IMG/VR virus record: IMGVR_UViG_3300033143_001962
Location: 1 to 64,000 of that record
DNA length: 64,000 bases
Strand: one strand, 5' to 3'
Part shown: positions 2,578-29,743 of the stretch, one piece after another
Numbering within the stretch: position 1 is the stretch's first letter
Layout: each line of letters opens with the position of its first letter
Translations under genes and position numbers: made by a program
Notes under the pieces: model-generated
Database searches by the model: none
Seen by the model: only the letters and a program-made list of their open reading frames with translations
What the model was told of the DNA's origin: nothing

Positions 2578-2924
2578 CGCACGTTCGGCTGTGGGTGTGG
2601 TAGACGTTCCGGTTGTGCTATCGTGTTGTATATAATTGTTAACCAGTGCTTATCTGAATTCTCAATAACATTACCAGTTTCGTCTAAGTAACCGGGTTGT
2701 ACTTCTTCGGTCATTTTATTAATAACGTCACATGGTACTGCCAGTGTGTCATTACCACTGTTGTAATAATTTATCATTTCCATCACGGTATCGTGATCGT
2801 ACTTGCCTGCGGCTTCTGTTCTAAAACAGTATCCAGCATTTTTTGGATTCCATAATGTAATATACGGGTCTTCTTCTTTAGTGTGCTTTACGCTTACTAT
2901 GTAGTACTTACTTATGTTTTTCAT
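2574..2924 (-). CDS. hypothetical phage protein
   Basis: YYIVSVKHT..DPYITLW.P.NAGY motif; overlaps its neighbours in the operon. Confidence 0.6.
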   Translation of the reverse strand: MKNISKYYIVSVKHTKEEDPYITLWNPKNAGYCFRTEAAGKYDHDTVMEMINYYNSGNDTLAVPCDVINKMTEEVQPGYLDETGNVIENSDKHWLTIIYNTIAQPERLPHPQPNVR

Positions 2925-3156
2925 TTGCTAGGCCTTTTAGTTGTTCAATCAACTCTTTATCAAGTTCTTCTCGGATTCCAATGGCTAATTCTCTTGCCAT
3001 GAAGTCTTGGAATGTTTCTGTTGGCGCTCCATGTTGTAATCTGTGCCATACCTTTTCTTCTTCGGTCATGCCCGCTTCGTCATCAGAAGGCATTATGTCT
3101 GTACCTCTGATATCCCAATTAGCCATTAGTGGGTTAGCTGGTTTTTTATTAGTCAC
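2908..3156 (-). CDS. WxRL-tagged mini-protein with major-capsid backbone-helix fragment
   Basis: EEEKVWHRLQ tag. FMARELAIGIREELDKELIEQLKGLA resembles MCP EIMAALAQEITAEIDQEILLSLRSLA. Confidence 0.65.
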   Translation of the reverse strand: MTNKKPANPLMANWDIRGTDIMPSDDEAGMTEEEKVWHRLQHGAPTETFQDFMARELAIGIREELDKELIEQLKGLANEKHK

Positions 3157-3474: not shown

Positions 3475-3666
3475 CTATTTAGCCCCGGATAATAACTTCC
3501 AATCTTTTCCATCATACGTCCACATGTCATCCGAACTGTGATCGAAGTAGATGCTGCCGGCTATAGGTTTAGCAAGCGGGTCACTAGTGAATTTTGGACC
3601 AGTGTATTTTAATCTATCCCAGACTTCTTGCTGCTCTTTAGTTAATTGTGGTGTACGTACTGACAT
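3475..3666 (-). CDS. WxRL-tagged mini-protein with tail-fibre repeat unit
   Basis: Likely start MSVRTPQ. Tag EQQEVWDRLK followed by GSIYFDHSSDDMWTYDGKDW. Confidence 0.65.
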   Translation of the reverse strand: MSVRTPQLTKEQQEVWDRLKYTGPKFTSDPLAKPIAGSIYFDHSSDDMWTYDGKDWKLLSGAK

Positions 3667-3946
3667 GCAAGTCTGCTCCGTCAGGTGGAGTTGATTTGAA
3701 CTGTATGGTAGTTGTTGCATTACTTTCAATACTGTAATCAAGTTTATGGCGTAGTTTGCAGCCGTCTTTAAAGACTTCGAATCGCACCTTCTCCAATGTA
3801 AGTGATGGTAATGCAAATACATCGCCCCAACCGTTACCTGTGAAGTGGTTTACACTTATTAGCCGGTCGCTAGCCTGCCTTAGTATATTCCACATTTCCT
3901 TTTTAGACTTAAATGCTTTTGTTATTGTTTTCTTAGGAAGTTTCAT
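3638..3946 (-). CDS. WxxL-tagged mini-protein with virion beta-repeat domain
   Basis: Likely start MKLPKK. Tag KKEMWNILR followed by FTGNG..F...V..DG...DYSI...F..PPDGA. Confidence 0.65.
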   Translation of the reverse strand: MKLPKKTITKAFKSKKEMWNILRQASDRLISVNHFTGNGWGDVFALPSLTLEKVRFEVFKDGCKLRHKLDYSIESNATTTIQFKSTPPDGADLHVSTYTTIN

Positions 3947-4218
3947 TTTAGTCTGCGCCACATTTCCCTTTTGTGATTCTCTTTACGCTCAGCTTTATTT
4001 CTTACATGCACAAAACGTTTATGCTCTACTATCTCATCTAAGTACGGGCAGTTAAACGCAATTTTATCTATGTCATAACTTTGCCCTACTGCTTGACAGG
4101 AGGTAGCAATGTACACACCATCTTGTGATCCGTCAGGCGAGCAGGCATCAATCTCCCACTCAATGTACTCCTGGCATTGTTTATTCCAGCAAAATTCGTT
4201 AAAGACTATGTCAGACAT
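3943..4218 (-). CDS. 4-Cys mini-protein with C-terminal WxRL tag
   Basis: Likely start MSDIV. FNEFCWNKQC...SC...NCPY; ends KREMWRRLK. Confidence 0.65.
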   Translation of the reverse strand: MSDIVFNEFCWNKQCQEYIEWEIDACSPDGSQDGVYIATSCQAVGQSYDIDKIAFNCPYLDEIVEHKRFVHVRNKAERKENHKREMWRRLK

Positions 4219-4522
4219 ATTGTAGTATCCTCCAAATCTTTTCCTTTTTCTTTTGCTTCTGCTCTTCTGCCCATTCCTTTTCAAACAGAAATTTTGCGCG
4301 GGCGTTAGTAACATGCCAATCAACCATACCTTGCAAATGCACACAATTATGCGGGTACGTAGGAATGTTTTCGTCGTTGTCTAAGATCTTAGAGCATGAT
4401 GCATATTCAACAGTGGACACATGAGTTATAAAACCATCTTCCATAATTAATTCTTCGCCGTACTCACTATAGCACTCGCACTCAAAATGATCTCTGCAAA
4501 GTTCGTACCAATTATAACTCAT
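4211..4522 (-). CDS. 4-Cys mini-protein with C-terminal WxxL tag
   Basis: YELCRDHFEC...SC...NCVH; ends KEKIWRILQYV. Confidence 0.65.
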   Translation of the reverse strand: MSYNWYELCRDHFECECYSEYGEELIMEDGFITHVSTVEYASCSKILDNDENIPTYPHNCVHLQGMVDWHVTNARAKFLFEKEWAEEQKQKKKEKIWRILQYV

Positions 4523-4731
4523 TTTAATTTATCCTCAGGGATGGACATTGCATCGTGTATCCTCTGCATGTACTGTTCTCTGAATTTATGCATCGTTGGC
4601 TGCACTGCTGTTTTAATAACATCTATATCTATATCTGCCCATCTATGCCAGCCAGTCTTAGGCTTGTTATCACCTTTAAGCTTATCCCACATTATCCACT
4701 TAGCTGTCTTTGTTTTCTTCGTCTTTTTCAT
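4519..4731 (-). CDS. WxKL-tagged mini-protein
   Basis: Likely start MKKTKK. Contains IMWDKLKGDNKPKTGW, shared with 6000..6311. Confidence 0.6.
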   Translation of the reverse strand: MKKTKKTKTAKWIMWDKLKGDNKPKTGWHRWADIDIDVIKTAVQPTMHKFREQYMQRIHDAMSIPEDKLK

Positions 4732-4969
4732 ATTCTGCTCTGGCTTGTGCAAACTGTTTGTTAGTAATCGGGAGGCCGTGTATCGTCCCGTAAATATCAT
4801 CGTCAGACATTGGCTGTATGCCTACTATATCATTTGCTAATAGTGTTGGCATTACCTTTCTAATCATTGGTATCACTATACTATCAAACCCGGGCTTGTG
4901 TACTTTCTTCAAAGCCCTGAATGTTTTTTGTGCGTCACTTATTGTCTTTTTAGTTAGTTTAAAAGACAT
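4700..4969 (-). CDS. mini-protein carrying the major-capsid Gol-region fragment
   Basis: IVIPMIRKVMPTLLANDIVGIQPMS is 15/25 identical to MCP residues 60-84 in this window. Confidence 0.75.
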   Translation of the reverse strand: MSFKLTKKTISDAQKTFRALKKVHKPGFDSIVIPMIRKVMPTLLANDIVGIQPMSDDDIYGTIHGLPITNKQFAQARAEYEKDEENKDS

Positions 4970-5234
4970 CTATGTACACCGGCATGTTGTTGATCCTTTT
5001 TAAGCTCTTTTCGGGCTCTAATAATTTCTTCCACATCATATCTTTTTTCTTTGCTTCATGCTTTGCTTTCTTAATATCTTCCATGTGTGGGCAATTTTCC
5101 GCTATCTTTAAAATATTAAATGTAATCTTGCTGGTGCCGATGCTGCATGTTATACACCTACCTACTTGCATTTTAATATCAGCGAAGTGCTTACACTCCT
5201 TTGCTCTGCAAAATTCGTTAAAGTTATACGCCAT
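4959..5234 (-). CDS. 4-Cys mini-protein with WxKL tag
   Basis: Likely start MAYNF. FNEFCRAKEC...TC...NCPH, tag KDMMWKKLL, tail INNMPVYIDVF. Confidence 0.65.
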   Translation of the reverse strand: MAYNFNEFCRAKECKHFADIKMQVGRCITCSIGTSKITFNILKIAENCPHMEDIKKAKHEAKKKDMMWKKLLEPEKSLKRINNMPVYIDVF

Positions 5235-5457
5235 TCCTATCATTATACACTTGATTGAGCAATGGTTCTACACCTTTGGATACATCGCGTATAACGCCAG
5301 GGTAGAATGAACTAATATCGTAATCGACTATATGCACACCTGGTTTCATTACGTGTCCTGTCTGTGACAGACGTTTCCACATTGCATCTTGCTCGCGTTT
5401 TAATTGCTTGCGCAAGCCGTTGCGTATTTTACGTTTAGTAATTTCTATTGCATTCAT
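5224..5457 (-). CDS. WxRL-tagged mini-protein with family B DNA polymerase motif A fragment
   Basis: Tag QDAMWKRLS followed by IVDYDISSFYPGVIR (compare PolB DxxSLYPSII). Confidence 0.65.
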   Translation of the reverse strand: MNAIEITKRKIRNGLRKQLKREQDAMWKRLSQTGHVMKPGVHIVDYDISSFYPGVIRDVSKGVEPLLNQVYNDRNGV

Positions 5458-5585
5458 TTATCATCTGGCTCGTTGAATATTATTTTAGCATTTTGGTAAT
5501 CTACCTGAAGCGGTATATACGGGCAATATATATAACCTGCGTTTACCTCTACTTCCACTGGAACGAATTTTAATTTGTCCCACAT
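5454..5585 (-). CDS. 43-aa WxKL-tagged mini-protein with capsid YCPYIPL fragment (not in ORF track)
   Basis: MWDKLKFVPVEVEVNAGYIYCPYIPLQVDYQNAKIIFNEPDDK; AAGGA RBS; ATGA overlap with the next gene. Confidence 0.7.
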   Translation of the reverse strand: MWDKLKFVPVEVEVNAGYIYCPYIPLQVDYQNAKIIFNEPDDK

Positions 5586-5601
5586 TATTTCCTTATCTGT
5601 T

Positions 5602-6003
5602 TTATTCGTGTTGTCCAAACTCTACTCTCTCGGCCATATTTTTCTTAATTTGATTCTGACGGTTCATATTATGAATTGTTCTAGCAAACGATGAGCGACA
5701 TAATACTGTTAAATACGAATACGCATTGCTACTCTTAGTTTCATCGTATCTGTGATAGTACCGTAACATATTAGTAATTGCGTCTTGTATTAAGTCCTCA
5801 GCGTATGTAAACGATTGAAAATTTTTCCTAGTTAATTCTTTCTCTGCTAAATGTACAAGGTACTTTGCTAAGTTGCCAGTCGTTTGTTTAATCAGTTTCG
5901 AGTGACGTATTGCTTCGCGTAACTCTGCGTTGGTTGTGATCTCAACTTGGTTGTACCATGGTGCTTTTAACTTACGCCAAAATAATTTTTGTTCTTTGTT
6001 CAT
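5602..6003 (-). CDS. compact gp55-like (late sigma) paralogue with N-terminal WxKL tag
   Basis: TTGNLAKYL..L.E...R.N...FTY.ED....A......Y DETKSSNAYSY.T....SF.R aligns with 28673..29653. Confidence 0.75.
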   Translation of the reverse strand: MNKEQKLFWRKLKAPWYNQVEITTNAELREAIRHSKLIKQTTGNLAKYLVHLAEKELTRKNFQSFTYAEDLIQDAITNMLRYYHRYDETKSSNAYSYLTVLCRSSFARTIHNMNRQNQIKKNMAERVEFGQHE

Positions 6004-6311
6004 ACAGAAGACGATTCAAAGTCTATTAGAATGGGGCTGTTTTTAGTACGTACTGCCCGGCCAAGACTCTGGAAAGCGATCATACTTTTCCCTACACCAG
6101 ACTGTGCTGTGAATCCATTTATGAAGCTACGGTTAATACCGTGCATGAAGTTTGATGCTTCTGCAAGATTCCGCCAACCTGTTTTCTTAGGTGTATTATC
6201 GCCACTAAGCTTGTTCCATATTTGCGAGGGTGTGCCGTGTATCTTTTCAAACTGCTTACGTTTGCCGTTTGCTATCTTACGTTTATTAATCTGTACTTTA
6301 CTTTCTTTCAT
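6000..6311 (-). CDS. WxKL-tagged mini-protein with RecA/DnaB-type Walker A fragment
   Basis: SQIWNKLS...TGWRNL...GINRSFINGFTAQSGVGKSMI...ILIDFE, then the protein ends. Confidence 0.65.
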   Translation of the reverse strand: MKESKVQINKRKIANGKRKQFEKIHGTPSQIWNKLSGDNTPKKTGWRNLAEASNFMHGINRSFINGFTAQSGVGKSMIAFQSLGRAVRTKNSPILIDFESSSV

Positions 6312-6463
6312 CGTGGTCCTGTATTCTTTGTTGGCTGTTTCATCGACAAAAATATACTAGATAGTAATTTCCATTCTTTCTGTGCTTCGGTGAGTGGAGG
6401 AGTGCTTAACTTCTTCCACATTTCGTGCTGTTCTCTTTCTTCTTTTGTTTTAAATATTTTCAC
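6308..6463 (-). CDS. WxKL-tagged mini-protein
   Basis: Likely GTG start after an AGGA RBS; EREQHEMWKKLS. Confidence 0.55.
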   Translation of the reverse strand: MKIFKTKEEREQHEMWKKLSTPPLTEAQKEWKLLSSIFLSMKQPTKNTGPR

Positions 6464-6743
6464 GGTGCTTCCTGAGTTTTGCTTTTGCTTGTACCCGTGT
6501 ACTAAAATCCGTAGATTCCACATCACGCATCAAATTTGCCAGTGCATCCCTTTCTTGTGCTAATCGTTTTTCTTCTTCGTAGTCAACATCAGCAGACATC
6601 ATTCGTGCTCTAATTCTGACAGACATATCCTGATCTTTACATAATAAATCCAAGTGCTTGCGGGTATGGATTAGCTCAATCTTTTCTTCTTGCGTCAGTG
6701 CTGAAATACGTAGCACATCAAATAAGTCTGTTTCAGTTGTCAT
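6450..6743 (-). CDS. small helical-repeat-like protein, paralogue of 8065..8268
   Basis: DLF..L...ALTQ.EK...I...KHLD....D.D..VR..AR. Confidence 0.6.
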   Translation of the reverse strand: MTTETDLFDVLRISALTQEEKIELIHTRKHLDLLCKDQDMSVRIRARMMSADVDYEEEKRLAQERDALANLMRDVESTDFSTRVQAKAKLRKHRENI

Positions 6744-6900
6744 ATAACGTTTTCTTCTTGCCCATTGTTGCCATTAAGTACGATCTGACTAGATAATTAT
6801 CTTGTACCGCGAAGTTAGGATCAATCCAATATGACTCAACGGCATGCTGAATGCTTCCGTACTTTAATTTTAAAAATGTTACCACTTGTTCAATTTCCAT
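6733..6900 (-). CDS. FLxLKYGS-family mini-protein, 55 aa (not in ORF track)
   Basis: MEIEQVVTFLKLKYGSIQHAVESYW...; directly downstream of a promoter. Confidence 0.65.
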   Translation of the reverse strand: MEIEQVVTFLKLKYGSIQHAVESYWIDPNFAVQDNYLVRSYLMATMGKKKTLYDN

Positions 6901-6949
6901 TTCTAATCGCCAATAGCCGCTTGTTTATGAGGTTGCGCTTTTAAGCTAC

Positions 6950-6979
6950 ATAATAACATTTTATGTTATAAAAAGTCAA
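6950..6979 (-). promoter_or_regulatory. sigma70-type early promoter
   Basis: TTGACT-18 nt-TATTAT with TGn extension. Confidence 0.6.
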
Positions 6980-6986
6980 GTATTTG

Positions 6987-7328
6987 CTAAACATCATTTG
7001 CCAAAATTGCTGTGGCTGATGGCTTTATGCGTTTACGATCGTTGTCGTACTGAGCTGTAGCAATTTCAATACTGCTTAAATGTTTTAATAATGAGTGGAG
7101 TTTTTTATCTTCGTTGCCTAACTTTGACCACATAATGTCTTTGCTGAACAAGGTGCGAATCGCGTTAACGTTTGTTTCAATTCTTTCTAACCTGCCATTG
7201 AACTCGCCTACGTTTCCATTGTGCTGCCGGACCGTGTGTGCGAGCTTAGTTTTCAACCCCGAAATTTCATCGTCTTTGTCACGGAGTTGTTGTTGCAGGT
7301 CTCTAATTAAATTCTTCTTAGCTGTCAT
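6987..7328 (-). CDS. coiled-coil protein with internal WxKL tag
   Basis: Heptad-rich N-half; KDIMWSKLG. Confidence 0.6.
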   Translation of the reverse strand: MTAKKNLIRDLQQQLRDKDDEISGLKTKLAHTVRQHNGNVGEFNGRLERIETNVNAIRTLFSKDIMWSKLGNEDKKLHSLLKHLSSIEIATAQYDNDRKRIKPSATAILANDV

Positions 7329-7380
7329 AAATCACCTAAATGTTATCAATACTACGCTTTCTTACTACGACTACGAGCTA

Positions 7381-7409
7381 AGTATAACATTTTTTGGTGC
7401 AGAAGTCAA
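7381..7409 (-). promoter_or_regulatory. sigma70-type early promoter
   Basis: TTGACT-17-TATACT with TGn extension. Confidence 0.75.
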
Positions 7410-7582
7410 GCTTTTCGCTTATTTAGGTTAATAAAGTTGTAATTATTGTATTGTTCTTTGGAGTACAGTAGGAGTGCTTTGTGTTCGTCGTTGGATAGAT
7501 TGATATCATTGTTGACCCAAAGGTCGAATGCGTTTGTCATGCTGCCGTACTTGAGAATTAGAAAGGTTTTTGCCTGGTCCAT
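7406..7582 (-). CDS. FLxLKYGS-family mini-protein, 58 aa (not in ORF track)
   Basis: MDQAKTFLILKYGSMTNAFDLW... Confidence 0.65.
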   Translation of the reverse strand: MDQAKTFLILKYGSMTNAFDLWVNNDINLSNDEHKALLLYSKEQYNNYNFINLNKRKA

Positions 7583-7634
7583 AGTAAATATTTACCATAG
7601 TACGGCTTTTTACGTGGGGGCGCTTTTGACCCTA

Positions 7635-7663
7635 AGTATAACGTTTTGTTATTTAAAAGTCAA
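7635..7663 (-). promoter_or_regulatory. sigma70-type early promoter
   Basis: TTGACT-17-TATACT. Confidence 0.75.
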
Positions 7664-7869
7664 GTTTTTATTAGCAGTTTGAAGAACATTGCGTCTTGCT
7701 CTTGCTCAAACCAGAAGACTGGGGCGGTGTACTGATATATAAATTTGCCAGTGGTGTGCTTGCTGCACCATGCGGATAGTTCTAATAGATTATTTTTACT
7801 ATGTGTGAATGATACTTTATACCATGTGTTTCTATCAAAGGCATCGTAACATTCTTGATTCTTTTTCAT
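7660..7869 (-). CDS. small hypothetical phage protein (W-C...FWFEQEQDAMFFKL type)
   Basis: Overlaps the upstream gene (ATGA); motif style common in small phage proteins. Confidence 0.6.
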   Translation of the reverse strand: MKKNQECYDAFDRNTWYKVSFTHSKNNLLELSAWCSKHTTGKFIYQYTAPVFWFEQEQDAMFFKLLIKT

Positions 7870-8072
7870 CGGAAGTTATTTATTTTTTTCAGTATATCAA
7901 GCAACTCCGGAATGTCCGGGTGTAAGTCCGGATCAATGCTATCCAGCCAGTGCTTGAACTCTTGGTCGTATTTTTGTATATTGATTTCTTTAATGAGCTC
8001 TAATTTCTGCTCGGTGGTTAAATACTCTTTGGTTAATCTATGCCACAGTTCTTTCTTTTCTTCTTCACTCAC
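7866..8072 (-). CDS. mini-protein with N-terminal WxRL tag
   Basis: MSEEEKKELWHRLT. Confidence 0.6.
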   Translation of the reverse strand: MSEEEKKELWHRLTKEYLTTEQKLELIKEINIQKYDQEFKHWLDSIDPDLHPDIPELLDILKKINNFR

Positions 8073-8268
8073 TTTGCCATCCTAGCGTTTTAAGTTGTTT
8101 GTTTATTCTAACGTACTCTTGTTTATGCTTTTGCTTTCTTGCGTATCTTCTAACTTCACTATCATCATCGTTTTCAAAATAATCTAAGTGCTTGTTACTA
8201 GCAATGCATAACATCTTTTCGTACTGAGTGAGGGCGTTTAATTTTATAATTGTGAATAAATCTTCCAT
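8065..8268 (-). CDS. paralogue of 6450..6743
   Basis: Likely start MEDLF; ALTQYEK...KHLDYFENDDDSEVRRYAR. Confidence 0.6.
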   Translation of the reverse strand: MEDLFTIIKLNALTQYEKMLCIASNKHLDYFENDDDSEVRRYARKQKHKQEYVRINKQLKTLGWQSE

Positions 8269-8373
8269 AGCTATGTCTGTGTTTTTGCGCTTGGGCAACT
8301 CACTTCGTGCCTTGCGTTCTCTCTGTAAGTTACAGTCGAACCTACTCACCAAGCTCCTTGCTTTCGCAGACTA

Positions 8374-8403
8374 AGCATAACATATTTTAGAGGCAAAAGT
8401 CAA
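8374..8403 (-). promoter_or_regulatory. sigma70-type early promoter
   Basis: TTGACT-18-TATGCT with TGn extension. Confidence 0.6.
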
Positions 8404-8418
8404 CCGAGGTTTGCCAAA

Positions 8419-8859
8419 CTAAACGTTGTCGTTTTCATGTAGGCGTGTGTATAATGATAGTGCTAAATCAAATTGCATAATATGTGACATTATCCAGGGA
8501 CGGATTATCGATACTAAGTAGTATCCCATAACTTTTGGATTATGCGATAACTGTGATGTGTCAGCAACTTGATGACGTATATCATTGTGTGATTCTTTGT
8601 GACAATCGGCTGCTAATTTAGGAAATCCAATTCTATGCATTAGTGCTTCTTCGTGTTCTAAATGTGTGTCAACGTAGTCAACTAGCTCATCGTAGTACTG
8701 CTGAATGTGCTCTATTGTTGGGTCATCGTGTGTAATTTCGTTAATAATATTATTGCATAATTTAAACAGATTTCGGTGTTCGTTATCTATTTGTAAGTCG
8801 CCTGTTTCAAGGTCAGGTTGCCATTCTAACGGCGTTAGATTATCGGATTGTGGGGTCAT
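8419..8859 (-). CDS. bacteriohemerythrin
   Basis: W...LETGDLQIDNEH..LF, HLEHEEALM, HKESH, WIMSHIMQFD: complete hemerythrin di-iron ligand set (H, HxxxE, HxxxH, HxxxxD). Confidence 0.9.
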   Translation of the reverse strand: MTPQSDNLTPLEWQPDLETGDLQIDNEHRNLFKLCNNIINEITHDDPTIEHIQQYYDELVDYVDTHLEHEEALMHRIGFPKLAADCHKESHNDIRHQVADTSQLSHNPKVMGYYLVSIIRPWIMSHIMQFDLALSLYTRLHENDNV

Positions 8860-8891
8860 TGTATAGTCCTATTTTAAGTTAGCTATTAGTA

Positions 8892-8920
8892 ATTGTAGCA
8901 CGGAATCGCACCAAAGTCTA
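8892..8920 (-). promoter_or_regulatory. sigma70-type promoter for hemerythrin
   Basis: TAGACT-17-TACAAT with TGn; a GATAAATA late-type box also lies at 8930..8937. Confidence 0.55.
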
Positions 8921-8942
8921 GTAGTTTTTTATTTATCGTGTT

Positions 8943-9089
8943 TCATTTTAATGCAAAAAATTCGTTAAGCATATTGAATTCTGCTACTGGCATTTTAGCG
9001 ACTGCTGACCAATTCATCATCATATCATATGCTTTTTGTTGTGATCCGTACTTAATAACAATGAATGATTTTATTTCTTCAGTACTCAT
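8943..9089 (-). CDS. FLxLKYGS-family mini-protein
   Basis: Likely start MSTEEIKSFIVIKYGSQQKAYD. Confidence 0.6.
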   Translation of the reverse strand: MSTEEIKSFIVIKYGSQQKAYDMMMNWSAVAKMPVAEFNMLNEFFALK

Positions 9090-9261
9090 AAGTGTACGCT
9101 CCTGTTCGGCGATTATTGTCTTTTGCCCATTGTGCAATCAGATCTGATTCTTCTTGTGTAAATGAGGTATCATCAAATTTATACATCCATTCTTCATAAG
9201 CAAGTATCATACTACCGTACTTTAGTACAAGAATTAGTTCAGTGTCTTTACCCGTTTTCAT
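9079..9261 (-). CDS. FLxLKYGS-family mini-protein
   Basis: ELILVLKYGSMILAYEEW. Confidence 0.65.
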   Translation of the reverse strand: MKTGKDTELILVLKYGSMILAYEEWMYKFDDTSFTQEESDLIAQWAKDNNRRTGAYTYEY

Positions 9262-9403
9262 CTGACCACCATTCCATAAATTCAGTTAGCATTGCGTCGA
9301 GATCTGTACCTAAATCGTCACCTGTAAAATTACAATACACCATTACAATGTCATCATTGGACCCGTAACGTAATCTTAAATATGTTAGTACCGCTGGATT
9401 CAT
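9248..9403 (-). CDS. FLxLKYGS-family mini-protein, 51 aa (not in ORF track)
   Basis: MNPAVLTYLRLRYGSNDDIVMVY...; ATGA overlap with 9400..9618. Confidence 0.6.
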   Translation of the reverse strand: MNPAVLTYLRLRYGSNDDIVMVYCNFTGDDLGTDLDAMLTEFMEWWSDENG

Positions 9404-9618
9404 GCTTTTAACTTTGCCCACATGTACAATCTATTAATTTCTTCGTCAAACTCAGGTGTGCGTATCGTGTACCCTTTGCCGTTAATTCTATACTGGTAAT
9501 TATCAAAATCGTAAGTCTTAGGTGCAGAGACTCTGTAGTGTCTGACCCAGAACAATGTGCCATTTAAGCATTCGTATACTACATCACGTTGGTGCATTAT
9601 AACCGAGACACTATTCAT
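9400..9618 (-). CDS. RINGxxY-family mini-protein with C-terminal WxKL tag
   Basis: YRINGKGY...EFDEEINRLYMWAKLKA. Confidence 0.6.
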   Translation of the reverse strand: MNSVSVIMHQRDVVYECLNGTLFWVRHYRVSAPKTYDFDNYQYRINGKGYTIRTPEFDEEINRLYMWAKLKA

Positions 9619-9940
9619 CTTTCTTCTCCGGGACGTGGTCTACTACTAATCTAAGTTCATGCATTGTTAAACGTGTGTACATACCAGGTGGTAGATTTAT
9701 CCAGTAATGATATGCATTAAACACTGACCCGTACTTCCAAATTAGTACCATCTCGGCGTTATCTTTAGTAACATCCAATGTCTCCAGGCAGCCCTGTTCG
9801 CACCATAAATTTAATAGTGGTGGTACATTTTCAACTGTTCTGACTCCTGGCATGTTAACTGCTACTTCAAACGCTGTGATCACTTCTCCGATTGAAGAGT
9901 ACTTAAGTGACAGGAATACTTGCTGTTCATCTTCAGTCAC
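9611..9940 (-). CDS. tandem two-domain FLxLKYGS-family protein
   Basis: VFLSLKYSS and MVLIWKYGSVFNAY. Confidence 0.65.
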   Translation of the reverse strand: MTEDEQQVFLSLKYSSIGEVITAFEVAVNMPGVRTVENVPPLLNLWCEQGCLETLDVTKDNAEMVLIWKYGSVFNAYHYWINLPPGMYTRLTMHELRLVVDHVPEKKDE

Positions 9941-10124
9941 TTAGCTTCTCCCACACACGTTCTTTCTTACGTTCTTCATAAAATGCTTTTCTGTACTCAA
10001 GTGTATTTTCACTGTACAGTACATCGTTAATACGAAGTGTAACCCAGCTTTGTGAAATTGCACTTTGTCGTAGCGTACTGCATACTTGCGCAAATTTACC
10101 ACTGCTTAATTCAATTTCAATCAC
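9933..10124 (-). CDS. RINGxxY-family mini-protein with C-terminal WxKL tag
   Basis: LRINDVLY...KERVWEKLSD. Confidence 0.6.
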   Translation of the reverse strand: MIEIELSSGKFAQVCSTLRQSAISQSWVTLRINDVLYSENTLEYRKAFYEERKKERVWEKLSD

Positions 10125-10311
10125 TTAGCTTCTGCCATATCTCTGCTTTTTCAATAAATTCTGTTGCTGCTCGTCTAAATGCGTACGAATCTTTTTTGTA
10201 AATAACACCTTTAATTCTGAACGTGTGCCACGCAAAATTAGGATTCTTTAAACGTGGCACATTAGCCTTCACCCAATACCCGCAGTACTTTTCTCTATAA
10301 TGTGCTTTCAT
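10117..10311 (-). CDS. RINGxxY-family mini-protein with C-terminal WxKL tag
   Basis: FRIKGVIY...KAEIWQKLSD. Confidence 0.6.
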   Translation of the reverse strand: MKAHYREKYCGYWVKANVPRLKNPNFAWHTFRIKGVIYKKDSYAFRRAATEFIEKAEIWQKLSD

Positions 10312-10320
10312 ACCCGCCTA

Positions 10321-10497
10321 CTAATAGTTGTGCTCTTGCTGAACAAATCGATAATACCAATCTAACATCTCGTGTCGTTGTACTGTAGTAAACAAATCAT
10401 AATCGCTTCGTAAGTCGCCGTCACGCATTGCGTCGTAAGCGTTAGCCATGCTCCCGTACTTTAATATTAAGAATGTTCTAGTCTTTTCAGGACTCAT
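10321..10497 (-). CDS. FLxLKYGS-family mini-protein, 58 aa (not in ORF track)
   Basis: MSPEKTRTFLILKYGSMANAYDAM... Confidence 0.65.
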   Translation of the reverse strand: MSPEKTRTFLILKYGSMANAYDAMRDGDLRSDYDLFTTVQRHEMLDWYYRFVQQEHNY

Positions 10498-10696
10498 TGT
10501 ACAATTCCTTTATGAAGAAGTCAAGCATCAATTCTTCTTGTTGATTAACATTCATTAAATGGTATGCTATCTGGTCTCCGAATTCAAGCGAGTCATGAAA
10601 CGCATCAGCTAACTGTTCTAAGCCGCCGTGTTTAAGTGCTAAGAATGTGTATTCCTCGGTTGTTATAAAATCATCAAGTTCAACGGTTTCAGTCAT
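10487..10696 (-). CDS. FLxLKYGS-family mini-protein
   Basis: YTFLALKHGGLEQLADAF. Confidence 0.6.
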   Translation of the reverse strand: MTETVELDDFITTEEYTFLALKHGGLEQLADAFHDSLEFGDQIAYHLMNVNQQEELMLDFFIKELYNES

Positions 10697-10697
10697 T

Positions 10698-10886
10698 TTA
10701 ATCCCACATGTACCTGCGTCTGTTCAATTCACTGTCAGTTGCGTAGTAAAAGTAATTGTTCATTATTGTGTAGTCATCCGGCACTTGCTTTCCAACAACG
10801 GTACTAGTATTCATAAAGACTTGATAGGCTTTGTACACCGTACCGTACTTTAAAATTAAATAAGATTTAGTTGCTGCGTAGTTCAT
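10698..10886 (-). CDS. FLxLKYGS-family mini-protein
   Basis: KSYLILKYGTVYKAYQVF. Confidence 0.65.
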   Translation of the reverse strand: MNYAATKSYLILKYGTVYKAYQVFMNTSTVVGKQVPDDYTIMNNYFYYATDSELNRRRYMWD

Positions 10887-11086
10887 AATATGATCTTCTG
10901 TACACGTTCAGGAATTATTAAATCACCTTGTTCCTTTTTAGATTTAATATGCGATTGAATAAAGCTTAGTAATTTGTAGTAGTCTGGATCACTGTCGAGT
11001 CCTAGTGATCGCAATGCACTGTACCTAGAAAAGATATGTGCTACGCTTCCATATTTAAGCATAAGGAATGTGTCTTCAGAATTCAT
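10883..11086 (-). CDS. FLxLKYGS-family mini-protein
   Basis: DTFLMLKYGSVAHIF. Confidence 0.65.
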   Translation of the reverse strand: MNSEDTFLMLKYGSVAHIFSRYSALRSLGLDSDPDYYKLLSFIQSHIKSKKEQGDLIIPERVQKIIL

Positions 11087-11277
11087 TAAATTAAATCCAT
11101 TGCATATTCCATTGCAGATTTAGTTCTTATCGCAAGATGGTGTGCCCAAGCATACCCTACTATCATGCATTGTTCATCTTCTGTAAAATCAGCATCCCAA
11201 TCATCAGATATGTTATAAGCATCAATGGCATTTTCCATGCTACCGTACTTTAATATTAAGAATGTTTTAATTGGCAT
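11086..11277 (-). CDS. FLxLKYGS-family mini-protein
   Basis: KTFLILKYGSMENAIDAY. Confidence 0.65.
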   Translation of the reverse strand: MPIKTFLILKYGSMENAIDAYNISDDWDADFTEDEQCMIVGYAWAHHLAIRTKSAMEYAMDLI

Positions 11278-11516
11278 TATGATTTACCGTACACTGTGGT
11301 AATTGTAGGGGCAAATACCCCATTCAATGCTGCCCAAGCTTCTAATGGTTTTACTACTTCATCGAACTCATCGGATGGTTTTTCATATATAAACCCATTT
11401 ATTTTAAAGTCAAACCTCTTAAAATTGTACTGGCGATCAGCCATTATTGTTGACTCTCTCCATACGCTGTCAAAGATTTCTCTATTTTTTGAGTACAAAA
11501 TGTCCTGATTAGCCAT
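11277..11516 (-). CDS. RINGxxY-family mini-protein
   Basis: Likely start MANQD, downstream of the promoter; FKINGFIY...EFDEVVKPLEAWAALN. Confidence 0.6.
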   Translation of the reverse strand: MANQDILYSKNREIFDSVWRESTIMADRQYNFKRFDFKINGFIYEKPSDEFDEVVKPLEAWAALNGVFAPTITTVYGKS

Positions 11517-11546
11517 GGTTATTACCCTTCTGAACGAATATAATGT

Positions 11547-11575
11547 AGTGTAACAGGTTATTTTGGGAAAGTCAA
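11547..11575 (-). promoter_or_regulatory. sigma70-type early promoter heading the mini-gene array
   Basis: TTGACT-17-TACACT with TGn extension. Confidence 0.7.
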
Positions 11576-11608
11576 GCTTTTGATAGGCACTCATTAATAA
11601 ATATATTA

Positions 11609-12091
11609 GTGAACTACTTAATACTAATTGACGTTTGGGGACGATTGTCAACACCGTTAGAGATCATTTGTAAAACTAATATAGCATTATTAATATCTGA
11701 TGTCTCAGACAATCCAAATTGGAAAATAATATATCAGGATTTTGATCCTGATATCGATCCTAAAATTCAGCACGTTTGCAACAATTCAAATAATGCAATA
11801 CCCGAGCACGATTGGGCTAATTTAAAATTAGATTCAAAAGACATAGTGTACTTTGCTGGGTTTCATGCTAATCACTGTTTGTTTGAGAAACCGTTAGGTA
11901 TTGATAATCTATTAAGTTTGCACCCTGCTCAAGAATTTTTTGTGTTATCCGACCTAACATGTGGGCTGAATCAACACACTCCTGTACCTATCAGTGACTT
12001 ATCTATTATTAATTTCAATAATGATTATAGTGTAAAAATGAACATGCGGCGCGCAATGCTGCTCGATAATTTACTTAGTATACAAATTTAA
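11609..12091 (+). CDS. isochorismatase/cysteine-hydrolase-like protein
   Basis: LILIDVW ... VYFAGFHANHCL ... VLSDLT. Confidence 0.55.
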   Translation: MNYLILIDVWGRLSTPLEIICKTNIALLISDVSDNPNWKIIYQDFDPDIDPKIQHVCNNSNNAIPEHDWANLKLDSKDIVYFAGFHANHCLFEKPLGIDNLLSLHPAQEFFVLSDLTCGLNQHTPVPISDLSIINFNNDYSVKMNMRRAMLLDNLLSIQI

Positions 12092-12094
12092 GTC

Positions 12095-12123
12095 AAAAAA
12101 AAGCACTCCGAAGAGTGCTTTTT
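12095..12123 (-). terminator. intrinsic terminator after major capsid gene (likely bidirectional)
   Basis: Minus strand AAAAAGCACTC-TTCG-GAGTGCTTTTTTTT with a UUCG tetraloop. Confidence 0.9.
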
Positions 12124-12146: not shown

Positions 12147-13337
12147 TTAGCTGAAAGACAAGTTGCTTACGCTGATTTCGCCTAAGTAATCACCAGCATT
12201 ACCAAAAGATGATGCAGTGTTAGTGAGTTCCACGTAACCATAACGTGTCATGAAGCTTACAACTGGTTCGAACGTAGACGGATCTAAAACAACGCCTGAG
12301 CTCATTAAAGGAATGTAAGGGCAGTAGAACGCTGGAGCGTCTGCTTCACTTGAACCTTTATAACCAATAAGTACCGGAGTACTATCAGCAGCATATGAAT
12401 CAACATATACTTTCATAGCACTGTTTAATGTACCAACTAACTTAGTGTTAGTAGGAGCTTCAAAAGTACCTTCAGTTGTACGTGCAAATGCAGATGTAGT
12501 AGCTGATTGTAATACTGTTAATGCAGCTGGACTAACAACGGCATAGTTACCTGCGCCACGACGTGTACGTTGTGCGATAAGGTTAGCAGTACGGTTAACT
12601 AATACAGCAAGTGCCGCATGTTCATCACCTACGAATGTAGCAGTACCAGATACAGCAGCTTGATCGTAGTTGAATTCAGTTGACGCTAAAGAACGTAAAG
12701 ATAATAAAATCTCTTGATCGATTTCAGCGGTAATTTCTTGTGCTAATGCAGCCATGATTTCAGCTTCGACATCAATGCCGTGCATTGATTGTGCATCTTG
12801 AGCAGCTTCAAAAGTCCAACGCGCTTGTAACTTACGTGTCTTCGCTTCAACAGCTTGCTTTAAGATTTGAACGGAAATGTTACGACCGCCTTCACCTTCC
12901 ATTTGCGCTGTAGCAGCACCACGGTAGTCAGTCTGTGTAGCACCAACGCCTGCAGAGTATGCTTGAGCAATTTTGAAAGGACTTAACGCTTCATCACCAG
13001 CTGTAGTTGGTGTACCAGCAGCAGATGTATCGTTCATTGTTGAACCGTAACGTACACGTAAAGTATGGATCTGGCTTACTGGACCAGACATTGGTTGAAC
13101 ACCTACTAATTCGTTTGCAATTACCGTAGGCATTACACGTCGAATTACTGGTAAAATTACACGGTTTAATGTTGCAACGTTACCAGCGGCAGTAGCGCCA
13201 CTTGTAGCAGATTCTGCTAAGTGGTTACGAGTGTTTTCTAGGATTACGCCCATTGTAGAACGTTTAGTACCGTCTAGACCTTCAAGCAATGCTTCTTTAG
13301 TCTCTCCCCAACGGCCTTCTAATAGTGCTTGTGACAT
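12147..13337 (-). CDS. gp23: major capsid protein (T4 gp23-like)
   Basis: RRVMPTVIANELVGVQPMSGP, KTRKLQARWTFEAAQD..HGID.EAE, FYCPYIPL, FMTRYG. Confidence 0.95.
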   Translation of the reverse strand: MSQALLEGRWGETKEALLEGLDGTKRSTMGVILENTRNHLAESATSGATAAGNVATLNRVILPVIRRVMPTVIANELVGVQPMSGPVSQIHTLRVRYGSTMNDTSAAGTPTTAGDEALSPFKIAQAYSAGVGATQTDYRGAATAQMEGEGGRNISVQILKQAVEAKTRKLQARWTFEAAQDAQSMHGIDVEAEIMAALAQEITAEIDQEILLSLRSLASTEFNYDQAAVSGTATFVGDEHAALAVLVNRTANLIAQRTRRGAGNYAVVSPAALTVLQSATTSAFARTTEGTFEAPTNTKLVGTLNSAMKVYVDSYAADSTPVLIGYKGSSEADAPAFYCPYIPLMSSGVVLDPSTFEPVVSFMTRYGYVELTNTASSFGNAGDYLGEISVSNLSFS

Positions 13338-18280: not shown

Positions 18281-18288
18281 TATTTATA
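18281..18288 (-). promoter_or_regulatory. T4-type late promoter TATAAATA
   Basis: Exact consensus about 20 nt upstream of the portal start. Confidence 0.75.
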
Positions 18289-20388: not shown

Positions 20389-20396
20389 TATAAATA
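20389..20396 (+). promoter_or_regulatory. T4-type late promoter TATAAATA (divergent CATAAATA at 20406..20413 on minus)
   Basis: Exact consensus upstream of 20424. Confidence 0.75.
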
Positions 20397-20423: not shown

Positions 20424-21263
20424 ATGAGTGAAAATCCTTTAAAGCAATATTTTAGAACAGCAGCGATACATTTAGATTTACCGTCAAAAGGTAAGTTCTA
20501 CCCAGATGACACTTTAGAAATGCCCGAGACAGGTGAAGTTGAAGTGTTTCCTATGACAGCGTTAGATGAAATAACATACAAAACACCAGACGCATTATTT
20601 AACGGTTCAGCCGTAGTTGATGTTATACAAAGCTGTATACCTGCAATTAAAAATGCATGGGAGATGCCCATTATAGATTTAACTGCGGTACTAACTGCAA
20701 TCAGAATTGCAAGTTTCGGACATCAAATTGACATCGAAACTAAATGTCCTGAGTGCGGTGAGAAGAGTGATTATGGTCTTGATTTACGCAATGTACTTGA
20801 TTCTGTTACTCCACCTGATTACTCTAAATCACTTAGTATTGGTGATCTTAAAATTATGTACAAGCCAATGTCGTACAGAGACTTAAACGAAAATAGTAAA
20901 TTACAATTCGAAGAAGCAAAGATAGAACAGTTACTTGTTACAGATGAAGCCGAAATGAGTAATGAGGAACAGTTAAAAATTATGTCTGATGCATTTAAAA
21001 AAGTATCTTTATATACATTAACTGCATTATCTAATAATATTAGTAAAATCATTACACCAGACGTGACAGTCTCCGACAACGAACACATTGTTGAATTCTT
21101 AGAAAACTGCGAACGTGATAGGTTTAAGCTTATTAAGAAAGAAGTTACTGACAGTCAGTCTGACAGTATTATAAAACCGTTACATATTAAATGCATCAAA
21201 TGTGAACATGAATACGATGAACCGTTCACTTTGGATATGTCATCTTTTTTCGCGCAAGACTAG
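20424..21263 (+). CDS. gp26: baseplate hub assembly protein (gp26-like)
   Basis: LPSKGKFY, PMTALDE, IRIASFG, CPEC ... CIKC zinc motifs. Confidence 0.75.
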   Translation: MSENPLKQYFRTAAIHLDLPSKGKFYPDDTLEMPETGEVEVFPMTALDEITYKTPDALFNGSAVVDVIQSCIPAIKNAWEMPIIDLTAVLTAIRIASFGHQIDIETKCPECGEKSDYGLDLRNVLDSVTPPDYSKSLSIGDLKIMYKPMSYRDLNENSKLQFEEAKIEQLLVTDEAEMSNEEQLKIMSDAFKKVSLYTLTALSNNISKIITPDVTVSDNEHIVEFLENCERDRFKLIKKEVTDSQSDSIIKPLHIKCIKCEHEYDEPFTLDMSSFFAQD

Positions 21264-27797: not shown

Positions 27798-28686
27798 GAA
27801 GCTCCTTTGGGTATGTATATGTCCATAATTCTGTTGTTGTTTTGGGAAAGTCGTCACCAATGTCATTACATCTTAATTCGAGATTTAATTCTTCTCTAAG
27901 ATATTTTTGTATGTATGCTTCGTCGTATACGGTACTGTCGTCTGGCATGTTGCAATTAATGTGTTTAGTAAAGTTATCTAAGAACAGTGCTATATCTTTG
28001 TCCTTATTAAGGTGCTTTTGTAAGCTTAACATTTCATTGTGATTTGTCATTATAGTGTCGTAACTTTCGGTTACGTCGAAGTTAAGTTCACGCGCTAACC
28101 GCATTAATGTATTTTTAAAATCAAATAATAAATCTTTGATGTTGATTTCAATACACTTGTCCTTGCTATTATATTCGCCAACTGAATTTACGCCTTTGAT
28201 AAATTCTTTATAACTGTAAAATTCTCGCATGTTTGCAACTTTTGAAAAATCCTCATCATTGATTTCTTTTCTATGCTGGTCTATTAGATATCTGTCATGA
28301 ACTTTATCGTGCTTGTTGTTGCGAATTAATAAATGCATGTCTGCGTCGGATCTAATTAATATACCTTTGACAACTTTTGATAAAATGTAATCAACACTTT
28401 CACCAGCACTCGAATCGGTTAAGTCACGCTCGTCATTAAATACATGATGCATTCGGAAAAACGGAAGTGTGTCTGGCCCGTGTACATGTTGCTCGAACGT
28501 AGGCATGTTAATCCTTGAGTTATATATTGTGAAATTTTTCTGCGTGTGAGAATTGCCATTCTTTCCCCACGGCAATTCCGGACTATCACAAAGCCCAATG
28601 CTGGTAAAATTGTTAAGTACCCAATAAAGATACGACCCGTATGCTCCAGGCTCGTATATTATAGGTATTGTTTTACTTTTTGTCAA
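27790..28686 (-). CDS. hypothetical protein, possible sulfotransferase-like P-loop fold
   Basis: N-terminal IIYEPGAYGSYL loop. Confidence 0.35.
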   Translation of the reverse strand: MTKSKTIPIIYEPGAYGSYLYWVLNNFTSIGLCDSPELPWGKNGNSHTQKNFTIYNSRINMPTFEQHVHGPDTLPFFRMHHVFNDERDLTDSSAGESVDYILSKVVKGILIRSDADMHLLIRNNKHDKVHDRYLIDQHRKEINDEDFSKVANMREFYSYKEFIKGVNSVGEYNSKDKCIEINIKDLLFDFKNTLMRLARELNFDVTESYDTIMTNHNEMLSLQKHLNKDKDIALFLDNFTKHINCNMPDDSTVYDEAYIQKYLREELNLELRCNDIGDDFPKTTTELWTYTYPKELHE

Positions 28687-29653
28687 GTTTCTCGTCTGTT
28701 AAATGTTTGTCGTCTGAGTTGTCATTACTAAACTGTCTAGTCCAGCTAGGAGTTAGTCCGTTAGCTTCTAAAATGTCATCACGTATGTTCTGCATCTTCT
28801 TCTCGATGTTTAGTACCCTGGTAAAGCTGTTAGTAACTGCGGCAGTGTAGTACGCAAATGGATTTTGTGATTTCATTTCATTAAACTGTAGTCCAATTTG
28901 ACTAAGCTGTAATAAAGCTTGCCCTTGCATCTCATCATTGTAAGTATAACCACGCCAGTTACTGCGCGTTCCGTAACGTTCGCATAACTTCATGTACATC
29001 ATTGCTAAGTTGCCAGTCGTCCGCCCGTGATCTTTATTAAATGCACCAGTTTCTAAATCACCTTTCCAATGACTCTTACCTACTAGCTGTACTGCCATAG
29101 CATTATCGCCTTCCATAGCAAACCCGTGGTCTGCTAACTTTGAAACACGGTAGTGATAAAATGCAGGAAAGCCACAACGCATAGGAATCATTTCTACTTC
29201 GAGCCCAGTGCCGTCTAGTAACTCTAATTCATCGTCGTTTAATAAATCATCAAACACTGCATTAGCTTTTGCCTGCTTAGCCGCTTTAGCAGTAGCAGCT
29301 TTTGATTTCTTTTTAGGTACAAGTGGAATGTGTTCTGTAGTCATTACTCTGTAAACTACATCTTCTAATTTGATATCTTCTAATTCGGTGGGAATGTCAA
29401 GCTTTGTTAAGCGTGTTGCCCTTGCCTGTCTGCCAAGTAGTGTAACCGGTACGTCTTCCATGATGGGCTTTCCATCTTTGTCTTTGCTTACTTCGACATT
29501 TTGTGTACCCCAAATGTCCGATAAGTTTTCTACTATGAAGTCTTGTTGATTGTCTTCTACTTTGTCCAGAAAAGAACAGTATGAAATTTTACTTAAGTGT
29601 ATCTCTTTCAACATATCCTTGTTATTTAAATAATTCTTTTTACGTTTAGCCAT
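28673..29653 (-). CDS. gp55: late transcription sigma factor (gp55-like)
   Basis: NYLNNKDML, RSNWRGYTYNDEM, FNEMKSQNPFAYYT; adjacent to gp47/gp46 as in T4; likely start MAKRKK. Confidence 0.85.
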   Translation of the reverse strand: MAKRKKNYLNNKDMLKEIHLSKISYCSFLDKVEDNQQDFIVENLSDIWGTQNVEVSKDKDGKPIMEDVPVTLLGRQARATRLTKLDIPTELEDIKLEDVVYRVMTTEHIPLVPKKKSKAATAKAAKQAKANAVFDDLLNDDELELLDGTGLEVEMIPMRCGFPAFYHYRVSKLADHGFAMEGDNAMAVQLVGKSHWKGDLETGAFNKDHGRTTGNLAMMYMKLCERYGTRSNWRGYTYNDEMQGQALLQLSQIGLQFNEMKSQNPFAYYTAAVTNSFTRVLNIEKKMQNIRDDILEANGLTPSWTRQFSNDNSDDKHLTDEKLDKK

Positions 29654-29681
29654 ACATCTCCTTGTAGCTTTAGATTTAACT

Positions 29682-29709
29682 ATTATAGCACATAAGCATA
29701 ATAAGTCAA
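29682..29709 (-). promoter_or_regulatory. sigma70-type promoter for gp55-47-46 operon
   Basis: TTGACT-16-TATAAT with TGn extension. Confidence 0.7.
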
Positions 29710-29743
29710 CCATAATTTATTATATTGGGTTATAATATGTACT

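Follow-up and report, generated by a model that had tools for sequence, protein, structure and literature searches.

The window analysed here comprises the first 64,000 nucleotides of the 249,797-bp virus record IMGVR_UViG_3300033143_001962 (CheckV completeness about 72 %). On its minus strand, between positions 5618 and 5454, lies a small gene (ORF2) which joins a helical "tag" shared with many neighbouring genes to a copy of one conserved strand motif of the phage's own major capsid protein (MCP). An ATG at 5585 leads to the stop at 5454 and gives 43 amino acids, whereas the longest form runs from TTG 5618 and gives 54. The gene fills the 144-nt gap between two genes and overlaps both of them: its start overlaps the end of the upstream gene (5602-6003) by 17 nt, and its TGA overlaps the ATG of the downstream gene (5224-5457) as ATGA. 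The MCP itself (12147-13337, minus strand, 396 aa) is of the T4 gp23 type (Pfam Gp23 E 1e-95), and the nearest cultured relatives, Vibrio phage 2.275.O, Phosso, PA5oct and the GAP32/CBB/121Q group, share only 62-68 % identity in this protein. A nucleotide search of positions 4000-8000 against 50,697 phage records found no match, and three scans of IMG/VR contigs (with the sigma-like upstream gene, with an ORF2 alignment and with a sigma alignment) found no relatives. The phage is therefore an uncultivated jumbo phage with no close relative in either collection. Translation table 11 was used throughout and no other genetic code was needed.

The starting point was a sequence-only reading, which described the 43-aa frame as an unannotated ORF made up of the tag and the capsid motif YCPYIPL. 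This observation is confirmed: the ORF exists as described, and in six-frame translation of the window the heptapeptide occurs only here and in the MCP. However, the 7-mer by itself is not significant. A tblastn search with the phage's own MCP gives only E 1.5 for this 14-aa match, and an unrelated junk frame at genome position 111751 shares another exact 7-mer (KIAQAYS) with the MCP. Pfam Gp23 scores only 13 bits on ORF2 against a gathering cut-off of 24.4. A chance resemblance of a short spurious ORF is nevertheless very unlikely and is already contradicted by the homologues. The probability of this specific 7-mer anywhere in six frames is about 1e-4. A six-frame search of the whole genome with Pfam Gp23 finds exactly four places, the MCP and three mini-ORFs: 4724-4888 (profile positions 4-61, E 2e-9), genome 156733-156831 (profile 149-181, E 1e-3) and ORF2 (profile 312-354, E 7e-3). 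Three related jumbo phages (PA5oct, GAP32 and Vibrio 2.275.O) show no extra hit at E<=1, which also means that the trait is not universal in the clade. Furthermore, a profile of the ORF2 family aligns to an MCP profile with hhalign E 2.8e-8 and a probability of 95 %, ORF residues 23-41 corresponding to MCP residues 330-348. All 563 tblastn hits listed for the motif fall in gp23-type capsid genes, and homologues of ORF2 hit phrog_138 ("major head protein") at profile positions 367-384.

The family was assembled from protein collections. A called 54-aa product of this frame (P0001) was already present in the large protein collection, so that the ORF is not unannotated as the sequence-only reading had held. 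A word search found one homologue, P0002 (55 aa), on a 958-bp metagenome contig (L001), where it sits in the same place after the same upstream gene. An HMM search of 1.84 billion representatives added P0003 (60 aa), P0004 (49 aa) and P0005, which is called as 69 aa but is probably about 52 aa long from a GTG with a good Shine-Dalgarno site (HMM E-values 3e-31 to 6e-5). The five known members are from uncultivated jumbo phages of the gp23-capsid clade; they come from separate 50%-identity clusters and are 36-48 % identical to ORF2. They are 49-60 aa long and consist of a charged N-terminal stretch, an amphipathic tag helix (E-hydrophobic-W-x-K-L-K/S), a linker with a proline four residues after the tag, the motif (D/N)AG-aromatic-aromatic-Y(C/A)PY(I/V)P(L/I) and a free-varying tail; ORF2 fits this architecture. 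E10, W13, K15, L16, P20, Y31, P33 and Y34 are invariant. The IPL part of the heptamer is not kept in the closest relative, which has YCPYVTI. The genomic setting was compared as well: the same neighbour occurs in L001 and an array of tagged genes in L013 (a contig with homologues of ORF2 and of the sister gene ORF3), but the neighbours differ in three further contigs (L014-L016), so that a conserved setting is neither established nor excluded.

The conserved N-terminal module (5556-5603, residues 6-21, KTDKEIMWDKLKFVPV) contains the tag helix and differs from L001 by four synonymous and no nonsynonymous changes in 16 codons. The aligned part of the two proteins is 24/33 identical, against 51 % for the neighbouring sigma paralogue. 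The capsid-like block follows at 5496-5552 (residues 23-41), with its core NAGYIYCPYIPL at 5508-5543. The tail (5457-5507, residues 38-54) is not conserved: the tails are unrelated among homologues, and in L001 the homologous DNA is read in another frame because of indels. A frame not conserved in relatives had been named beforehand as one refutation of the idea, and the frame is conserved. An AF2 model of the family has low confidence (pLDDT 62.8), with only a helix at residues 8-16 defined, and is too poor for a fold search; a search for look-alikes in the ESM Atlas gave no usable hit.

The sequence-only reading had further proposed that an ACG codon upstream of the internal ATG was once an ATG, and that an earlier, longer tag helix had been lost. 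The upstream codons are as it gave them, and a C-to-T change in ACG would indeed be silent (CAC to CAT, His) in the overlapping gene 5602-6003. Whether relatives have ATG at this codon had been named as a check, and the idea is not supported: in L001 the codon is CCT, and the start ATG lies three codons further upstream, exactly where this phage has TTG 5618. In L013 the position of the internal ATG, the hydrophobic position of the tag, is GTA, so translation there must begin upstream. The residues upstream of the internal ATG (KTDKEI) are conserved as protein. The N-terminal extension is therefore part of the protein, and the gene most likely starts at TTG 5618. The sense that the tag helix is longer is right, but the longer helix is most likely still made. 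Expression of ORF2 by frameshifting from the sigma paralogue was considered and rejected, since a stop lies two codons before the start in both the window and L001, and the upstream genes differ in L013 and L014.

Alignment of the MCP to solved T4 gp23 chains places MCP residues 333-344 (DAPAFYCPYIPL) on mature-chain positions 380-391, which is gp23 residues 445-456 (DAGIYYAPYVAL), a P-domain beta-strand; the MCP's own copy of the whole block, residues 330-348, is encoded at 12294-12350. The strand contains the gp31-bypass site A455, and it is reported that A455V removes the need for the gp31 co-chaperonin, as does a triple change in the spine helix (PMC9546572). The earlier suggestion that the motif looks more like the DAG-type capsids than like the resident MCP is supported. 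The ORF2 core NAGYIYCPYIPL matches DAGYFYCPYIPL of the XacN1 MCP at 10/12 and the own DAPAFYCPYIPL at 8/12, while homologues carry DAGYFYCPYIPL (the same twelve residues, in P0005), DAGYFYAPYIPI and DAGFFYCPYV. An old origin is also supported: all seven third-codon positions of YCPYIPL differ between ORF and MCP (14/21 nt), so this is not a recent copy, and it has been held by selection on the residues. Taken together, the interpretation offered by the sequence-only reading is partly supported.

The closeness of ORF2 to the clade consensus could be taken for a weapon against co-infecting relatives, that is, a dominant-negative peptide which poisons the folding or assembly of competitors' capsid proteins. 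The mini-protein keeps the DAG-type motif, while the resident MCP and its nearest relative have DAP/DAA, and all blocks chosen are the parts shared by every gp23-type capsid. However, the resident MCP shares the YCPYIPL core and thus has no obvious way to be immune, and no data on co-infection exist. This reading is improbable.

ORF2 is one of at least three tagged mini-genes in this genome, each carrying a different conserved gp23 block. ORF1 (4700-4969, minus strand, 89 aa) has a degenerate tag (QKTFRALKK, compared with QKLFWRKLK of 5602-6003), followed about nine residues later by the N-terminal conserved gp23 block at 4805-4888 (MCP residues 57-84, 54 % identity, E 1e-6; Pfam Gp23 E 1.2e-8; phrog_138 E 9e-9). 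It has a full-length homologue, P0009, at 68 % identity. This block is equivalent to the Gol region of T4, the most conserved part of gp23 and the ligand of EF-Tu and Lit (PMC3014915). The Gol region spans residues 93-122. ORF3 (genome 156721-156921, 66 aa) lies outside the window, tightly packed between genes, and has the tag EVWNKLK followed by the block that spans the P-domain strand and the start of the spine helix (MCP 169-198; Pfam E 1.6e-3; phrog_138 E 1e-3). L013 holds a homologue of ORF3 (E 4e-9 to ORF3, E 4e-7 to the MCP) 1.2 kb from the ORF2 homologue, and the tags of the ORF2 and ORF3 families align at hhalign E 2.8e-5. A decayed collinear capsid pseudogene is rejected, since the blocks lie in the wrong order, at separate loci, each in its own tight gene. 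Outside this lineage, Xanthomonas phage XacN1 and Sinorhizobium phage Phosso also hold separate ORFs with gp23 blocks but without this tag. XacN1 has the N block at the end of ORF261 (E 4e-8) and the middle block in the 74-aa ORF451 (E 3e-7), while Phosso has the C block at the start of gp170 (E 9e-6), which has no relatives in the phage collection, and an N block at 182280-182546.

The three blocks of ORF1, ORF3 and ORF2 are P-domain or N-arm elements, which brings in the possibility of an assembly or folding modulator of the phage's own MCP. In this view, the isolated strand would pair with MCP folding intermediates, or would rebuild a split P-domain-like sheet together with the ORF1 and ORF3 pieces, and so tune the folding, timing or geometry of head assembly. 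T4 residues 455 (C block) and 292/306/307 (spine helix, which starts in the M block) are the places of gp31-bypass mutations, and M98 (N block) and H282/M284 (M block) cluster in the T4 head (PMC9546572). No GroES or GroEL homologue was found in the 250 kb of the record, but this is weak evidence as the genome is only about 72 % complete. The proximity of the ORF2 and ORF3 homologues in L013 also fits. A complex prediction for ORF1, ORF3 and ORF2 scored 0.02 against a mark of 0.32, which counts neither for nor against binding. On the other hand, the genes sit in a small-gene array with early-type signals and not in the late head operon, the three blocks co-occur only partially in XacN1, Phosso and L014, and the same tag also heads proteins which have nothing to do with heads. 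This reading is regarded as doubtful.

One of these proteins is the upstream neighbour (5602-6003, minus strand, 133 aa), composed of an N-terminal tag (FWRKLK) and a sigma region-2 domain (phrog_234 E 8e-22). It is a short paralogue of the full-length late sigma factor (28673-29713, minus strand, 346 aa; phrog_12791 E 5e-72), the parent or paralogue, with 29 % identity to residues 231-316. Another is a P-loop protein headed by the N-terminal module of ORF2 itself in L002, the only contig found by a metagenome scan. Its payload first looked like a terminase, but Pfam gives only weak DnaB_C/AAA matches. The downstream neighbour (5224-5457, minus strand, 77 aa) carries the tag MWKRL and, tentatively, a stretch resembling motif A of the phage's family-B DNA polymerase (blastp E 0.022 to residues 379-413 of genome ORF 214604-217375, DNA_pol_B by Pfam); a homologue search found only the query itself. 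Further weak matches are 3475-3822 to a tail-fibre-like protein (E 0.03), 2908-3126 to the MCP spine helix (E 0.5) and a weak portal fragment at genome 233130-233324. In addition, a 51-aa portal fragment (phrog_213 E 7e-8) lies just upstream of P0004 in L014.

Altogether about 15 consecutive small minus-strand ORFs between 2908 and 10311 carry the tag (hydrophobic-W-x-K/R-L), and five more are scattered through the genome. The tag usually ends a charged helix, is followed by a Pro/Gly linker, and can be N-terminal, internal or C-terminal. The codons for K/R and L vary freely, which shows a peptide motif, and a DNA-level element such as a promoter or RBS cassette is rejected for the family as a whole, although the 27 nt identical between the window and L001 leave a local RNA constraint possible. 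A resemblance to the capsid targeting sequence of T4 internal proteins, an N-terminal peptide of about 10 aa ending in a prohead-protease site (L/I-x-E), was also considered. By eye there is no L/I-x-E after the tag, and the tag also sits on a sigma paralogue and at C-termini; virion content was not examined, and the comparison settles nothing either way.

The tag could also be a recombination and translation-start cassette that captures random gene pieces in a hyperplastic region, with the capsid piece as a passenger without motif-specific function. The same N-terminal module is joined to different payloads in L002 and L013, gene content between conserved neighbours varies (L001 against the window, L014 against L015), and the tails drift freely, even changing frame. 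However, the payload motif, and not only the tag, is the best-conserved part across the five members, substitutions in it are synonymous or conservative, and the residues are kept although third codon positions relative to the MCP are saturated. A dead passenger would have decayed evenly, and such a functionless by-product is therefore considered unlikely and is ranked fourth, after the decoy or interference towards a host factor, the modulation of the phage's own capsid folding or assembly and the weapon against competitors.

Early or middle expression of the array is suggested by consensus matching only. A strong terminator follows the MCP (12123-12098), and TTGACT-N17/18-TAxxxT matches recur before several array genes, the nearest upstream of ORF2 being a sigma-70-like match at 6979-6950 (TTGACT-18-TATTAT, minus strand). 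The total number of such matches is not above that in shuffled sequences, and no sequencing run was listed for this phage from which expression could be examined. An exact T4-type late promoter, TATAAATA, sits 29 nt before the portal gene, but none lies within the array.

What the analysis demonstrates is a genuine, selected gene of about 54 aa, its two-part architecture, the capsid origin of its payload, and the existence of sister genes and of a tagged sigma paralogue; the function is inferred. The favoured but tentative reading, held at somewhat less than even confidence, is a mimic mini-protein (decoy or interference), probably made from the small-gene array before the late capsid gene. 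It would present the capsid strand in isolation and occupy whatever normally meets that strand while the MCP is nascent or unfolded. A core strand of a folded capsid protein is exposed only in nascent or unfolded MCP, and its natural readers would therefore be the MCP's own partner strands, chaperones, or host sensors of nascent capsid protein. A host factor that senses or handles nascent core phage proteins is rated the likeliest target, which would make ORF2 a decoy by analogy with the Gol segment. Capsid, portal and tail-fibre proteins are frequent defence triggers (PMC13728456). However, no known defence sensor reads this particular strand, the Gol precedent concerns the block carried by ORF1, and expression, proteomic and interaction data are lacking. 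The tag helix would dock all tagged mini-proteins to one common partner, and the identity of both partners is unknown.

A wider reading, which is doubtful but would be of great interest if true, is that a lineage of jumbo phages keeps a library of tagged "self-mimic" mini-proteins. Each would present one conserved linear motif of a core phage protein: three or four capsid blocks, the late sigma factor, and possibly portal, DNA-polymerase motif A and tail fibre. They would be made early to blind host sensors, or competitor functions, that recognise the nascent core phage proteome, with the shared tag coupling every decoy to one common effector or hub. This rests partly on weak matches, and as HMM searches can only see conserved blocks, part of the pattern that the motif is always a conserved one is detection bias.

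Capsid, portal, terminase and tail proteins are the main patterns that bacterial immune systems detect, and the phage answers known so far are point mutations or inhibitors unrelated to the trigger. A conserved gene family that copies conserved strands of the phage's own capsid protein into 50-90-residue proteins behind a common tag would be a new class of phage gene, whatever its exact role (decoy, assembly regulator or anti-competitor). Searches of open-access papers on the topic and a recent counter-defence review mention no phage-encoded capsid-fragment proteins, and ORF2 is therefore rated a new kind of phage gene with unknown function. Such a family would offer short, testable peptides that mark which capsid segments matter to some partner, an explanation for some of the many orphan small ORFs of jumbo phages, and a simple computational screen of small ORFs against profiles of core proteins to find more of them. 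It also shows how genes are built in hyperplastic regions, by joining a portable tag module to pieces of essential genes.

Among known families, ORF2 is a fragment-sized mimic and not a capsid protein: it stays below the Pfam Gp23 cut-off, matches positions 312-354 of a 376-position profile only and gives no Pfam hit at E<=0.01 in hmmscan, although it carries the C-terminal P-domain strand motif DAGxxY(A/C)PY(V/I)(A/P)L. The gp24-type vertex protein is likewise a second gene derived from the capsid gene, but it is a full-length paralogue of gp23 that keeps the whole HK97-like fold, whereas ORF2 keeps 12-19 residues; no full second Gp23 hit exists in the 250 kb. Short, mostly unannotated PHROG families share motifs with the major head or portal protein. 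ORF2 and homologues touch phrog_13936 (E 0.0018-0.07), ORF1 and XacN1 ORF261 touch phrog_12830, and the L014 portal fragment touches phrog_23805, so such mini-ORFs already exist, unnoticed, in sequenced phages. These matches are weak and 9-17 residues long, and no function or description is attached to the families. For phrog_13936 the match of ORF2 (E 0.0018) covers only residues 29-39 against positions 24-34 of a 43-position profile, which leaves membership undecided. The PeSL elements of T4-type hyperplastic regions are also short conserved modules at gene starts with novel small ORFs swapped behind them between related phages; they are, however, non-coding promoter and stem-loop cassettes, whereas the module found here is translated and conserved as peptide. 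The Gol segment, which triggers the Lit protease through EF-Tu, is likewise a short, linear, highly conserved stretch of a gp23-type capsid protein that acts on its own as a ligand for another protein (PMC3014915). It is part of the capsid gene itself, ORF2 does not carry the Gol-equivalent region, and binding to EF-Tu or a protease was not assayed. ORF2 would work most like a microProtein or decoy, although binding to the parent or to its partner was not measured and interference with the parent has not been shown. MicroProteins, a concept from plants and animals, are small single-motif proteins derived from larger ones that act by forming non-productive complexes; they are not described in phages and, in contrast to them, the proteins found here carry a common extra tag helix. 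As in microProteins, a very small protein keeps one interaction motif of a large parent protein encoded in the same genome, and several such derivatives (capsid, sigma) exist here.

Two further small genes of the phage combine the helical tag with a block of the gp23-type major capsid protein (MCP). The gene at 4700-4969 (minus strand) of the window encodes 89 aa and consists of a degenerate tag followed by the most conserved N-terminal gp23 block, the Gol-equivalent region. A full-length homologue (P0009) with 68% identity exists, and a precomputed Pfam Gp23 assignment is present on both proteins. The second gene is located outside the window at genome position 156721-156921 (minus strand; 6721-6921 in the genome segment L003) and encodes 66 aa comprising the tag EVWNKLK and the gp23 P-domain strand together with the start of the spine helix. 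A homologue of this gene was found at 11402-11671 in the metagenomic contig L013, and in the phage itself it is followed by an RF-1/GGQ-domain protein (156329-156724, Pfam RF-1 E 1e-15). In addition, small ORFs carrying T4-portal (gp20) fragments are present at genome position 233130-233324 (minus strand) and at 879-1034 in the metagenomic contig L014. The one in L014 (51 aa, phrog_213 E 7e-8) lies directly upstream of P0004, a homologue of the tagged capsid-strand gene.

The genome contains two late-sigma-like genes on the minus strand of the window, a full one of 346 aa at 28673-29713 (phrog_12791) and a tagged paralogue of 133 aa at 5602-6003 which covers only the region-2 domain. Furthermore, the tag proteins encoded at 5224-5457, 4519-4731 and 6000-6311 (minus strand) possess a payload resembling the motif-A region of the family-B DNA polymerase of the phage (genome 214604-217375). 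This resemblance consists of VDYDISSFYPG compared with VDINSLYPS (E 0.022) and a shared PK(K/T)(T)GW stretch, and 6000-6311 also contains a Walker-A-like SGVGKS. The payload of the tag protein at 3475-3822 (minus strand) resembles a repeat of a tail-fibre or virion structural protein encoded at 52847-54340 (plus strand) with an E-value of 0.03, and a similar motif occurs at 11948-12148 in L013. The small proteins encoded at 3943-4314 and 4959-5243 (minus strand) are Cys-rich paralogues (NEFC...C..C...NCP) which carry the tag at or near the C-terminus.

A second repeated family of small genes (50-70 aa) is characterized by the motif (L/I)ILKYGS...A near the N-terminus. It was found at 6733-11277 (minus strand) of the window, at 2229-8843 in L013 and at 3-865 in the metagenomic contig L002, with at least 11 copies in the phage studied here and about 20 in L013. 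No family match was obtained for these proteins. About eight paralogous Cys-rich genes of about 400 aa are located at 62708-64000 of the window and at genome positions 64-73 kb, 90.4 kb and 239.6 kb; they look radical-SAM-like, but only by eye. Likewise by eye, GGDEF- and EAL-like proteins, with GGDEF and EALLR motifs in the tblastn output, and TctA/TctC-like transporter genes appear to be present in this phage genome (99.9, 150.9-152.6 and 171.3-173.3 kb; 232-235 kb). The window also contains a single open reading frame of 4342 aa at 39102-52130 (plus strand) and, at about 32834 within the 30899-33034 region, a minus-strand frame reading YLIRYLIRY..., that is, a short tandem DNA repeat.

With regard to transcription signals, a strong hairpin terminator (12098-12123, minus strand) is located immediately after the MCP gene and is followed by a sigma-70-like promoter match. 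An exact T4-type late promoter, TATAAATA, lies at 18281-18288 (minus strand), 29 nt before the portal gene, and also at 20389-20396 (plus strand), before 20424-21263.
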